Shown here in pieces: positions 36,601-64,000 of a DNA stretch of 64,000 bases (position 1 is its first letter; every line of letters starts with the position of its first letter). The notes under the pieces are model-generated. The model did not search any database. It saw only the letters and a list, made by a program, of their open reading frames with translations, and was not told the DNA's origin. Source of the stretch: Magallana gigas (lineage: Eukaryota); contig NC_088855.1 of NCBI RefSeq assembly GCF_963853765.1, positions 45,198,001 to 45,262,000 on the forward strand, read 5' to 3'. The position numbers and the translations under genes were made by a program.

Positions 36601-39600
36601 CTAGATGTCAATGCCACAGCAAAAGAAATCTCCACCGGACACTTCCCACACTATTTACCTAGAGCTCGCGCAACAGACAAAATGGCATTGACCCTCCAAA
36701 TGCCCCTGACACAAAGAACAAACCCTCCTAAGCGTTCAATCCTAGCTCTCTCGTCCTGTCAAAATAAGATTACATAACTTCAAGGACACAGTAAATATCA
36801 AAGGGAAACAAAGTCTAAAATAAGGATTTGAGTCTTCCTTGTTTTTTTTTTAAATATACATGTATTGCATTTAAATTCTTTCTAAAATTACTTGAGTACA
36901 GCTGGTAAAAATGTCTACTCATCGAAAACTACAAAAAAAATTAAAATAAAGACTTCAATCCTTAGTTTGGACCCTGTTTTCCCATGCTATGTTTCCATGG
37001 TTACCTATTGCCCTTGAAACGGCCAGATTGCCATTGACGCGCCATGTTCCCATGTACAGAACAACTCCACCGAGAGCCTCTATACGACTTTTCTCATCCT
37101 GAAAAATTTCTTGTTTATATTGTTTTTTGAATATGAAAACAGGCACTGTCTGTTACACCTTTAAAGTATCATTTGAGTCCATTACATCAAATATTATCTA
37201 TCAAATTGAGTATCAAAGTCAAACTGAAATGAAATTCATATGCATTCATATAAATAGCAGTAAAATAAACTTCACTTTTGAAAGCCATGAATTTTCAAAG
37301 AGAGTGAATTTATCATTGACAAATTTAATATTTTGATAGATAGAGGAGAAGTATGATTCCAAATCTGTCTACCTGTCTCTCTGGTTTGTGCGGGTTCATG
37401 ATACTCAGCGCATGGCCGTCTCGGACCAGACAGGCCTGCGAGTCTCCCAGCCAGGCCAGATAGAGCATCTTATCCCTAATAAACACAGTCACTCCCGTAC
37501 AGCCACTCTTTATTCCCTATCAAAAAGAATTGTGTAAAAAAGTCTTAGAACAAAAATTAAAAAATGCGAAGGGAGGTAACTTAAATTTCCATGTATCACA
37601 TGCAAGAATATTTTATATATACATGTATGCTTTTGGAATCCATTCATTTGCTGGATTACTGATTTAAATGGTACCAATATCTTTCCTTATTAACTAATTG
37701 CATAGGTACAAACACTAGAAACAAGATATCTTTGAGCCAATGCTCACTCTGATTCCCCCATTCTGATGTGAATATACAAAAAAGCAAAGTCGTCATTTAA
37801 CAGGAAGTTGACATTGATTTTGTTCAATAATGATTCCCACTATAGGGCATGCCTAAACAAAGAGTGTGTTAAATTTCAACCATCTGTAATGAATAATTTA
37901 TGAGAAATCTTTGACAAAAATTTGATGGAAAATTTAGGCTAAAAATAAACAAAGTTGTCATTTAACAGGAAGCTTATGTCTGATTGGTACAAAAATGAAC
38001 CCACCATATGGCATACTTTAACAAAGAGTGTGTTCAAATATTAAGCATCTGCAATTAATAGCTGCTGATAAAAATGCATCCAAAATTTGTTACGGATAGA
38101 CAGACACACAGGTAAAACAGTATAGTGCCCCTCTCCATCAGAGTAGGGTATATCTAAAAATGTTAAAGATGGTAACCAACTATGTATATGGCTACTGCAC
38201 CTCTCTTTGTGCTTTTCTAATGAAGTAATCATCTGTGGCTTTGTAGGAACACTTGAGGGCAGCTTCTGGATCACTGGAGAACTTCTCACAGGTCGGCAGA
38301 TGTATATGTAAGTGATTGGCGGCATATACAGCTGCTTCAATACCAGCATGGCCATCAAACACACTGTAGTAGGACTGCTGGGGATAATCCTGCAAAACAA
38401 CAATGGGTTGTCAAACTCACCATGTGAATTATTGATCTAATTTACATTCACAGATGTACTTTTTTTCTGCCTCCATGTAAATGTTAACAACCAGAAGAAA
38501 GTATATTCAAATGAAATGACTCACTCTTGGAAAAAAAAACCTTTAATTACTTTTCTATATCTTGCACTGTAATTTTTGTCTTTCTCTATCTCTTAATAGT
38601 ATTTAAACTCAAACAGGAATGAAATGTACGTTGGATAATTACGTAGTAACAGAAGTCAGTAACTTTATTCTGTGGGCGTGTGATAGTATTTATGAGGTTG
38701 ACCATTAGTACCTGTACCTTGAGATCAAATAAGGTATTCATGTCTTGGAGCATCACATGCTTGTCCTCCATTTTTCTTCGAGTATTCTTGATTTCATAGT
38801 GGTAGCACTCATGAACCTGAGCTGGAATGGGTATTACTGGCAAGTCTTTATTCCACTTTTGGCACACCTCATCCACCATATCAATGATGTGTTCCATCAG
38901 TGTGGAGGCATCCAGTACTAGGAAATAACAAATATCAACATGTAATATTTTCCCTCAGTCAACATGTAATATCTATTCCTGCATTAATTCCCCATTATAT
39001 GATCTATTCTATTTATTATATGACTGTTGCAGATACACTGTGTCATTGTAGTACATGTACTTTAATATGTTTCCCTACATGATTTTTTTCTCGTTTATAA
39101 CAGAATAATATATACCCATATGAATTTGACATCAAAGGAAAGCAATTAAAATTTCCTTTTTATCACATCTGCAGCTTTTCACTAGTACATTGTAATCACT
39201 TTGCTTTACTGATATATCTACAGAATAATCTTTACAACTACATGTATTAAATGAGGAAAGATAAGAGAGGCAAATTATCTCATAAAACAGAAAAACAAAG
39301 AGCAAGTTGTGTAATCTAATTATGATGGATGTTTTGGTGATTAAGACATGAATGGATCTGAGGAGTCTCTACCAGATTCTGGGCGCTGGATTTCATTACT
39401 GGAGTTCTCCTCCTTGGCTTCCACTTCATTAGAGCCTTCAGGTCTCTCTTCAAACTCTCTGAAGTCAATCTTCTTGGCCTGTTCATATACCTCTCTTGTG
39501 ATAGCTGCCGCTAGTGTGGGAGGGCATTTTCTGAAATGGATGAGAAATTCAAAAAATTTGTTTTTGTGTAAAATCTATCATTGTATTAATTAAATAAAAC

Positions 39601-61800: not shown

Positions 61801-64000
61801 GAAACTTGTGTGGAAGCATCCTCAGGTAGTGTAGATTCAAAGTTGTGAAATTCATGACCCCCGGGGGTAGGATAGGGCCACAATGAGGGGTCAAAGTTTT
61901 ACATAGGAGTATATAGAGTAAATCTTTAAAAATCTTCTTCTCAGAAACTAATCAGCCAGGAAAGCTGAAACTTGTGTGGAAGCATCCTCAGGTAGTGTAG
62001 ATTCAAAGTTGTGAAAATCATGAACCCCGGGGGTAGGGTGGGGTCACATTGGGGGGATGTTAAAGTTTTACATAGGAATATATAGAGTAAATCTTTAAAA
62101 ATCTTCTTCTCAGAAACTAATCAGCCAGGAAAGCTGAAACTTGTGTGGAAGCATCCTCAGGTAGTGTAGATTCAAAGTTGTGAAATTCATGATCCCTGGG
62201 GGTAGGTTGGGGCCACAATGGGGGGGGGGGGTCGAAGTTTTACATAGGAATAAATAGAGTAAATATTTAAAAATCTTCTTCTCAGAAACTAATCAGCCAG
62301 GAAAGCTAAAACTTGTGTGGAAGCATCCTCAGGTAGTGGAAATTCAAAATTGTGAAATTCATGACCCCCGGGGGTAAGGTGGGGCCACAATGGGGGTCAA
62401 AGTTTTACATAGGAATATATATAGTAAATCTTTAAAAATCTTCTTCTCAGAAACTAATCAGCCAGGAAAGCTGAAACTTGTGTGGAAGCATCCTCAGGTA
62501 GTGTAGATTCAAAGTTGTGAAAATCATGAACCCCAGGGGTACGTTGGGGCCACAATGAGGGGTCAAAGTTTTACATAGGAATATATATAGTAAATCTTTA
62601 AAAATCTTCTTCTCAGAAACTAATCAGCCAGGAAAGCTGAAACTTGTGTGGAAGCATCCTCAGGTAGTGTAGATTCAAAGTTGTGAAAATCATGAACCCC
62701 AGGGGTACGTTGGGGCCACAATGAGGGGTCAAAGTTTTACATAGGAATATATATAGTAAATCTTTAAAAATCTTCTTCTCAGAAACTAATCAGCCAGGAA
62801 AGCTGAAACTTGTGTGGAAGCATCCTCAGGTAGTGTAGATTCAAAGTTGTGAAAATCATGAACCCCAGGGGTACGTTGGGGCCACAATGAGGGGTCAAAG
62901 TTTTACATAGGAATATATATAGTAAATCTTTAAAAATCTTCTTCTCAGAAACTAATCAGCCAGGAAAGCTGAAACTTGTGTGGAAGCATCCTCAGGTATT
63001 GGAAATTTAAAATTGTGAAAATCATGACCCCTGGGGGTAAGGTGGGGCCACAATGGGGGTCAAAGTTTTACATAGGAATATATAGAGTAAATATTTAAAA
63101 ATCTTCTTCTCAGAAACTAATCAGCCAGGAAAGCTAAAACTTGTGTGGAAGCATCCTCAGGTAGTGGAGATTCAAAATTGTGAAAATCATGAACCCCAGG
63201 GGTACGTTGGGGCCACAATGAGGGGTCAAAGTTTTACATAGGAATATATATAGTAAATCTTTAAAAATCTTCTTCTCAGAAACTAATCAGCCAGGAAAGC
63301 TGAAACTTGTGTGGAAGCATCCTCAGGTAGTGTAGATTCAAAGTTGTGAAAATCATGAACCCCAGGGGTACGTTGGGGCCACAATGAGGGGTCAAAGTTT
63401 TACATAGGAATATATATAGTAAATCTTTAAAAATCTTCTTCTCAGAAACTAATCAGCCAGGAAAGCTAAAACTTGTGTGGAAGCATCCTCAGGTAGTGGA
63501 AATTCAAAATTGTGAAATTCATGACCCCCGGGGGTAAGGTGGGGCCACAATGGGGGTCAAAGTTTTACATAGGAATATATATAGTAAATCTTTAAAAATC
63601 TTCTTCTCAGAAACTAATCAGCCAGGAAAGCTGAAACTTGTGTTGAAGTATCCTCAGGTAGTGTAGATTCAAAGTTGTGAAAATCATGAACTCCGGGGGT
63701 AGGGTGGGGCCACATTGGGGGGATGTTAAAGTTTTACATAGGAATATATAGAGTAAATCTTTAAAAATCTTCTTCTCAGAAACTAATCAGCCAGGAAAGC
63801 TGAAACTTGTGTGGAAGCATCCTCAGGTAGTGTAGATTCAAAGTTGTGAAATTCATGATCCCTGGGGGTAGGTTGGGGCCACAATGGGGGGGGGGGGGGT
63901 CGAAGTTTTACATAGGAATAAATAGAGTAAATATTTAAAAATCTTCTTCTCAGAAACTAATCAGCCAGGAAAGCTAAAACTTGTGTGGAAGCATCCTCAG
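58842..64000 (+). mobile_element. Helentron-type non-autonomous element (oyster Helitron-N2/HINE-like) carrying the satellite array; right end outside the window
   Basis: Starts ttttt-agctcacctgagct-gaa-agctcaagtgagct (5' subTIR hairpin), followed by a (gtcc/ctgtcc)n microsatellite and then tandem monomers. This is the known architecture of oyster Helentron non-autonomous elements. Confidence 0.85.
59105..64000 (+). repeat. Cg170-like satellite array, ~165-168-bp monomers, about 29 or more copies
   Basis: The anchor aaaaatcttcttctcagaaact recurs at 59271, 59437, 59602, 59768 and onward (period 165-166) to the window end. Confidence 0.92.

Follow-up and report, generated by a model that had tools for sequence, protein, structure and literature searches.

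Two homologous, very probably mutually exclusive exons in an oyster PP2C phosphatase gene of the PPM1E/PPM1F type

How does a gene use two versions of the same internal exon if its reading frame has room for only one of them? This question is raised by 64,000 nucleotides of the Magallana gigas genome (RefSeq assembly GCF_963853765.1, contig NC_088855.1, positions 45,198,001 to 45,262,000), which we call the window. The minus strand of the window carries a PPM1E/F-like PP2C phosphatase gene with two homologous exons side by side: exon 6a (37005..37098), which is of the ancestral type, and exon 6b (36659..36755), which is a derived form. A previous analysis of the letters alone (the sequence-only reading) had proposed that only one of the two is used in any mRNA and that the choice swaps the flap region of the enzyme. 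We conclude that 6a and 6b are very probably tandem-duplicated mutually exclusive exons. The kind of event is well known (a tandem exon duplication in which the frame forbids both or neither), and our literature search found no published description of it for this gene and lineage: neither of the 6a/6b pair, nor of mutually exclusive exons in PPM1E/F or PP2C.

Exon 6a has 94 nt (31 codons plus one nucleotide) and encodes 31 residues that end in ...AVSRAI. Exon 6b has 97 nt (32 codons plus one nucleotide) and encodes 32 residues that end in ...SVARAL, with a one-residue insertion at the tip of a hairpin. Each exon has AG/GT sites, with a ...cag acceptor upstream and a gtaa.. donor downstream. 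Both are entered in phase 0 from the constitutive exon 5 (37373..37516), which ends in ...NPHKPERQ and is supported by tblastn with a Saccostrea cucullata protein (P0004) as well as by joints to exon 4, 6a, and 6b. Both leave an extra G, which combines with the GT of exon 7 to give GGT, the glycine codon directly ahead of the metal-binding aspartate. Exon 7 is the last exon (33683..35235); it encodes the rest of the catalytic domain from that aspartate onwards, a long low-complexity C-terminal tail, and the stop, and it is supported by joints to 6a and 6b and by the alignment of P0004, which reaches 33686. The peptides of 6a and 6b are 59% identical, with one one-residue gap (tblastn within the window, E = 6e-8). 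The intron between them (36756..37004) is 249 nt long and has GT..AG ends. Direct reading thus bears out the coordinates and phases of the homologous, phase-locked pair with good splice sites that had been claimed.

That including both exons or neither would break the frame was also borne out, by translating the joined exons. If both are included (5+6a+6b+7), there is a stop five codons into 6b, 83 nt upstream of the 6b|7 junction. As this is the last junction, such an mRNA should be a substrate for nonsense-mediated decay. If neither is included (5+7), the stop comes after two codons of exon 7, ahead of two metal-binding aspartate residues. We infer that exclusivity is enforced at least by the reading frame.

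To see which exons are spliced, we used three RNA-like contig sets (X32, X33, and X25) and one raw poly(A) run (X21), covering region 34900-38450. Exon junctions were read as CT..AC joints on the plus strand, which are GT..AG on the gene strand. The sequence-only reading had predicted four junctions around the pair, and all four were recovered as GT..AG joints in RNA-derived contigs. The exon 5|6a joint (37373|37098) is in X32 and X33, with a depth of 16.3 in X33; the 6a|exon 7 joint (37005|35235) is in X32, X33, and X25, with depths of 9.6 and 5.7 in X33. The upstream exon 4|5 joint (37516|38201) is in X32 and X33 and is crossed by seven raw reads of X21. In X33, exon 5 is also joined to 6b, skipping 6a (37373|36755, depth 5.6), and 6b is joined to exon 7 (36659|35235, depth 7.4). 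Because X33 carries spliced joints, it is cDNA. The share of 6b in X33 is roughly 1/4 to 1/3 of the junction-contig depth, which is a poor measure of expression. Exon 6a is the major form. These joints support the view that an mRNA takes up 6b as a substitute for 6a, and not in company with it.

Several features of the RNA data weigh against this view. Spliced 6b was seen in just one of the four runs (X33). In X32 and X25, 6b is found in unspliced contigs only, and the spliced joints are those of 6a. The 6b joints come from short k-mer contigs whose shorter side has 24-26 nt plus 3-6 ambiguous letters; this equals the assembler's expected 30-nt overlap, yet it falls under the 31-nt rule for bridging. 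Because the short side equals that overlap, we think that the 6b junction k-mers do come from reads. The raw run X21 is too shallow (about 3-6 on exons) for the 6a or 6b junctions, and because only the exon 4|5 junction is visible in it (7 reads), it is uninformative on the 6a:6b ratio. There is no 6a|6b or 5|7 joint among the joints listed, which leave out three; contigs also lose rare forms, and transcripts of this kind would be hidden by decay, so that the listing does not strictly exclude a 6a|6b joint.

Independent evidence for two isoforms comes from related species, where the pair is annotated: RefSeq already models 6a and 6b isoforms in Crassostrea virginica and in three species of Mytilus. 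In C. virginica (the copy at locus L002), XP_078338622.1 (isoform X1, 847 amino acids) carries the 6b peptide and XP_022340256.2 (isoform X2, 846 amino acids) carries the 6a peptide. The differences between them are confined to residues 297-323, and both were found in the same protein cluster as the C. virginica last-exon product. In Mytilus californianus, M. galloprovincialis, and M. trossulus, isoforms X1 and X2 differ only in the exon-6 segment, and by one residue in length. The annotated proteins of Saccostrea, scallops, Pinctada, and Tegillarca have 6a only. A word-indexed protein search with the C. virginica 6b region returned one unrelated protein of the 31-residue type and nothing else, and protein searches for relatives turned up no full-length protein from the same species. 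Since the kind of event is familiar and automatic annotation lists both isoforms in related species, the pair by itself is of moderate interest only. Its interest is raised by deep conservation, by its location in the flap loop, and by the lead that an intron stem offers, all of which are discussed below.

In an older gene model from M. galloprovincialis (VDI41469.1; P0143, 862 amino acids), part of 6a runs directly into 6b. The exon pair has probably misled the annotation here.

To follow the pair across molluscs, we defined it as a 94-nt exon and then a 97-nt exon, each with AG/GT sites. The pair is present in six further pteriomorph species. The intron between 6a and 6b is 360 nt long in S. 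cucullata, 292 nt in C. virginica, 353 nt in Mizuhopecten yessoensis, 342 nt in Pecten maximus, 723 nt in M. californianus, and 60 nt in Tegillarca granosa (L011 28318-28377). The open frame, the 97-nt length, and the AG/GT sites of 6b are kept in seven species of four orders.

Both exons had been claimed to be under selection, and dN/dS and DNA identity do indicate purifying selection on 6a and 6b. Between oysters, the DNA identity of 6b is 0.91, 0.82, and 0.82, compared with 0.77-0.85 for exons 5 and 7 and 0.10-0.59 for the flanking introns (gaps counted); 6b matches these constitutive exons in conservation and is a conserved island within unalignable introns. The dN/dS of 6b is 0.14, 0.28, and 0.11 among oysters and 0.095 between two scallops. 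The 6a peptide does not differ among three oysters, although their 6a exons have 6-15 synonymous differences (dN of about 0 at dS of 0.3-1.2). At the protein level, 6b evolves about twice as fast as 6a, yet it is clearly constrained.

These results bear on two other accounts of 6b. If 6b were a dead or unused pseudo-exon, left over from a duplication and found in no productive mRNA, this would fit with the annotated proteins from Saccostrea, scallops, Pinctada, and Tegillarca, which use 6a only, and with X32 and X25, where 6b lies just within unspliced contigs. We consider this very improbable, given that both 6b junctions are present in X33, that there are RefSeq isoforms with 6b in C. virginica and the three Mytilus, that frame, length, and splice sites are kept across those seven species with dN/dS of 0.1-0.3, and that 6b stands out from the introns around it as an island of conservation. 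The sequence-only reading had itself considered a dead exon, with no 6b transcript and with 6b lost from related species; what we found is both 6b junctions in X33 and a pair that is kept across Pteriomorphia. A less extreme account, which still seems improbable to us, is that 6b is mainly a regulated "poison" addition to 6a, so that double inclusion leads to decay and tunes the amount of the phosphatase without producing a second isoform. The stop 83 nt before the last junction would suit such a role, decay would conceal transcripts with 6a and 6b from RNA sequencing, and a stem that joins the regions of the 6a donor and the 6b acceptor (see below) could equally favor 6a-6b joining. But breaking the frame does not by itself require a conserved protein, and 6b keeps the PP2C-invariant residues and has a low dN/dS. 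Also, an exon 5|6b joint that skips 6a was observed, and no 6a|6b joint is among those listed. Mutually exclusive splicing, as originally claimed, is supported by the 6b-only joints, the frame, selection, and the RefSeq isoform pairs.

How old is the pair? A tree of exon peptides groups all seven copies of 6b in one clade (ultrafast bootstrap 96, SH-aLRT 94). The duplication therefore took place only once, earlier than the split of the pteriomorph orders to which oysters, scallops, mussels, and ark shells belong. Solemya and Haliotis have a single exon of 31 codons. Mercenaria (L007 19179-19275) and Sinanodonta (L010 41867-41963) have a single exon of 32 codons, with the motif ..GD-x-WRVGG... 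The best tree places this heteroconch 32-residue exon elsewhere than 6b, and a joint clade with 6b is not rejected (p-AU 0.22).

The caenogastropods Batillaria and Nucella have a 32-residue form as well (the 32-residue proteins are P0044, P0078, P0054, and P0059). The 32-codon forms of heteroconchs and caenogastropods may be a retained 6b-type exon or may reflect an independent insertion at the same hairpin tip.

Which phosphatase is altered by the choice of exon? PF00481 is precomputed for all of the orthologues and for the last-exon product of the window, and an AlphaFold model matches PP2C structures (E = 2e-27, TM 0.76-0.83). A 48-sequence alignment that includes both isoforms has invariant columns for the metal-binding and catalytic motifs (DGH, the GD after the RVNG strand, DG..D, and DN) at D62-G63-H64, G194-D195, D225-G226, D229, and D269, and both 6a and 6b join the same GD of exon 7. 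Across molluscs, brachiopods, nemerteans, and vertebrates, the best named matches are PPM1E or PPM1F, and the best sequence match in the PDB was deposited as a CaM-kinase phosphatase. Judging from its closest named relatives, we assign the gene to the PPM1E/PPM1F (CaMKP / POPX) subfamily.

PP2C phosphatases act without regulatory subunits, and their choice of substrates is a long-standing problem. AlphaFold gives confident models of the catalytic domain for both C. virginica isoforms (pLDDT 94-95, pTM 0.90). In these models the exon 6 segment comprises a helix (model residues 161-169), then a beta-hairpin (174-183), and finally the strand towards the Gly-Asp metal ligand. The residue that 6b has in addition lies at the hairpin tip (..V-R-G-I-W.. 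in 6b versus ..M-G-T-W.. in 6a), where 6b has Arg/Gly/Ile for Met/Gly/Thr; there are further differences after RVN. The PP2C-invariant residues are retained in both exons, and 6b keeps DE, RI, GG, WRVN, and R-A. By structure and sequence, the best match is FEM-2 from Caenorhabditis elegans (4JND), followed by plant clade-A PP2Cs and by PPM1B, PPM1A, and PPM1K. According to HMMER, the variable hairpin aligns with the ABI1 segment ..VIQWNGARV..; relative to this hairpin segment, PPM1B is three residues shorter and FEM-2 is one residue longer, like 6b.

These alignments relate the swapped segment to a loop of known function. In plant clade-A PP2Cs, a tryptophan of the flap loop (ABI1 Trp300 / HAB1 Trp385) docks into PYL receptors and into the cleft of SnRK2.6 (PMC10380758, PMC4592019). 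Specifically, Trp385 of HAB1 is in a "flap loop" that inserts into the catalytic cleft of SnRK2.6 (PMC10380758), and the tryptophan of the flap region is required for PYL binding (PMC4592019). The element that differs between 6a and 6b is the same one, namely the hairpin that links the GG-strand to the RV(N/F)G strand. But each plant gene has a single fixed loop, with variation among paralogues, while the oyster gene offers two loops by splicing. FEM-2 (PDB 4JND) is the closest solved structure and, like 6b, has one residue inserted at the tip of this hairpin; however, the identity is only 27%, FEM-2 is a sex-determination phosphatase, and the data at hand show no exon pair for it. The claim that the pair covers the flap thus holds in the plant-PP2C sense, by way of the alignment of the hairpin with the ABI1 tryptophan loop. 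As for the further claim, that this segment shapes substrate selection, the exon does encode the flap-loop hairpin, and a difference in substrates between the two isoforms is our inference. We lean towards the view that the isoforms share their catalysis and would differ in the substrates or regulators that dock beside the active site. Because one gene gives two versions of the loop, both of which are kept by selection, the pair is a natural experiment on how this loop directs specificity in the branch of CaM-kinase/PAK phosphatases.

What keeps 6a and 6b from being joined to each other, other than the frame? Incompatible spliceosome classes are not the answer, as the donors of exon 5 (gtagac), 6a (gtaacc), and 6b (gtaaat) and the acceptors (all ..cag) show no U12 consensus. 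The sequence-only reading had also suggested looking for docking and selector pairings. When we searched three oysters for inverted repeats over the whole stretch between exons 5 and 7, no shared docking site emerged, although weak or gapped pairings may escape such a search, so the locus does not fall into this class. Whole introns compared with one another by RNAduplex gave global duplexes no better than those of shuffled sequences. As for steric exclusion, the intron had been described as too long for it. At 249 nt this is true of its linear length, but a conserved stem closes the intron and may shorten the effective length: with the predicted stem, about 21 and 47 nt would lie outside it.

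The 6a-6b intron of each of the three oysters contains the longest, or nearly the longest, inverted repeat of the region that exons 5 and 7 enclose. Its first arm starts about 15-22 nt past the 6a donor, and its second arm stops about 40-47 nt short of the 6b acceptor. In M. gigas, the core of the 5' arm (36948..36983, or 36934-36990 by inverted-repeat search) starts 22 nt past the 5' splice site of 6a, and the 3' arm (36803..36837, or 36795-36851 by inverted-repeat search), which contains GACTTTGTTTCCC, ends 47 nt short of the 3' splice site of 6b. The closing stem is present in the minimum-energy and centroid folds of each oyster intron (z = -3.15, -3.17, and -3.24), and the consensus fold of the three introns retains it; for the 249-nt intron of M. 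gigas (z = -3.15), 0 of 200 shuffled sequences fold as well. After alignment, 66 of the 72 stem positions are paired, compared with 25-49 of 72 if the partner is slid by one to four columns. Invariant columns make up 37 of 48 in the stem arms and 44 of 279 elsewhere in the intron. A closing helix in matching relative positions also occurs in the two scallops, and its sequence is unrelated to the oyster stem. There is no clear end-closing stem in the 723-nt intron of Mytilus.

A second conserved element lies beyond the donor of 6b. In the three oysters, a 23-nt block of the next intron is conserved (36605..36627, which is 32-54 nt past the 5' splice site of 6b). Within this block, TGGCATTGAC (36607-36616) is exactly complementary to ten bases of exon 6b, GTCAATGCCA (36683..36692, in the RVNA codons), which form the exonic half of a predicted helix. 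All three oysters have predicted folds in which the 6b donor is enclosed by this pairing. The same intron 10-mer would pair with the homologous sequence of 6a with one mismatch. The helix around its donor may hold 6b back as the minor form.

We also considered other origins for these elements. An intronic snoRNA, miRNA, or other known RNA was rejected, as Rfam has no match at E <= 1 in 35200-38450, and neither of the two conserved intron elements matches an Rfam family. An origin of the stem from a miniature inverted-repeat transposon or another transposon is not favored: the arms are conserved where the rest of the intron is not, and they are single-copy in the window, as is the 36605-36627 block.

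The 6a-6b intron of M. californianus contains a 51-nt inverted repeat (L006 18201-18393) whose arms are 78-93% complementary and lie 91 nt apart. It has poly-C/G and poly-A/T runs and looks like a miniature inverted-repeat transposon; the fold of this intron has z = -6.

By what route might the closing stem matter? It would pair the region about 20-35 nt past the 6a donor with the region about 45 nt before the 6b acceptor, which would leave an effective intron of about 65-80 nt. This approaches the 60 nt of the ark shell, and the 6a donor and the 6b branch point might then not be occupied together. That the stem brings the 6a donor so near to the 6b branch region that the 6a-6b intron could not be spliced is a tentative proposal, and we would sooner doubt it than rely on it. 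The broader idea, that exclusion relies on RNA structure that imitates a short intron, draws on the presence of a stem in oysters and scallops from unrelated sequences; we view it as possible and on balance unlikely. Two points count against it. The changes in the stem are one-sided (A-U to G-U), with no double compensation, and there are only three oyster sequences; also, the conservation of the arms could instead reflect protein-binding sites. Because the changes are one-sided, the support for the stem is conservation and complementarity, not covariation. Logan contigs of two further oyster lineages (L005 and L012-L014) end short of 6b and added no sequences for covariation.

An alternative that concerns the mechanism only, and to which we give nearly even chances, is that the intron elements are binding sites for regulators or local structures that set the 6a:6b ratio, and that exclusivity comes from frame and decay alone. 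This would account for the lack of compensatory double changes in the stem, for arms that are G-rich and pyrimidine-rich like known protein-binding elements, for the long Mytilus intron that lacks a clear end-closing stem, and for the second conserved block, which pairs with exon 6b and encloses its donor and so could mask it. It explains less well why the stem pairs in the correct register far better than when it is slid (66/72 versus 25-49/72), why the folds have z of about -3.2 in three species, why scallops have an analogous closing helix of unrelated sequence, and why the 6a-6b intron of the ark shell is 60 nt long.

Comparison with known systems places the pair most easily among tandem mutually exclusive exons that are policed by frame and decay. 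This is a common type among animal pairs of such exons, and the mechanisms have been reviewed (PMC6071210). Like others of this type, 6a and 6b are adjacent and homologous, have nearly equal lengths and the same phase, and have a summed length that is not a multiple of three. Unlike those described, they change a loop beside the active site of a PP2C, and a whole subclass of bivalves has kept the pair. The conserved complementary elements in the intron beside the pair resemble those of ATE1 exons 7a/7b and of docking/selector systems of the Dscam type (PMC7797038, PMC6071210). There, a single element can pair with one or another of several sites, each next to a different exon, and so loops an exon out (PMC7797038, PMC6071210), whereas both oyster arms are within the 6a-6b intron and neither exon is looped out.

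The idea of a donor and a branch point that are too close has precedents as well. Exons 2 and 3 of alpha-tropomyosin are kept apart by steric exclusion, through a short distance from donor to branch point. The same holds for exons 4a and 4b of OGDH (PMC7969005). The 60-nt intron of Tegillarca is similar, but the oyster and scallop introns are 249-360 nt long, and closeness would require an RNA stem. If the proposed role of the stem is correct, it would be structure-imposed steric exclusion, a variant that is distinct from docking/selector competition and from distant branch points. Together, the intron stem and the 60-nt intron of the ark shell provide a testable model for how two exons across a long intron are kept unjoined.

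Tegillarca is the one species here in which classical steric exclusion could apply without RNA structure.

The remaining exons of the gene, all on the minus strand, lie upstream of exon 5. Exon 4 (38201..38395) encodes the ..FDGHAG.. metal-binding motif and was identified by tblastn with P0004 and by the joint 37516|38201. Exons 1 (about 44411-44205), 2 (about 39541-39359), and 3 (about 38918-38718) were located by aligning P0004 to the window.

Two other regions of the window drew our attention. Within intron 4, at 37637-37993, the summed contig depth is in the thousands in X32 and in the hundreds in X33, and in the raw poly(A) run the two strands have 45-51 and 16-18 reads per bin. This segment has many loose ends and joints that go back, and it looks like a fragment of a high-copy transcribed repeat or transposon. 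Near the end of the window, at about 59200-63950 on the plus strand, there are recurring weak tblastn matches to a repeated peptide (GGSKFYIGI-Y/N-RVN, IGGMLKFYIGIYRVN). The GC and AT skew of this region are strongly positive, and it looks like a tandem array of an element or gene.

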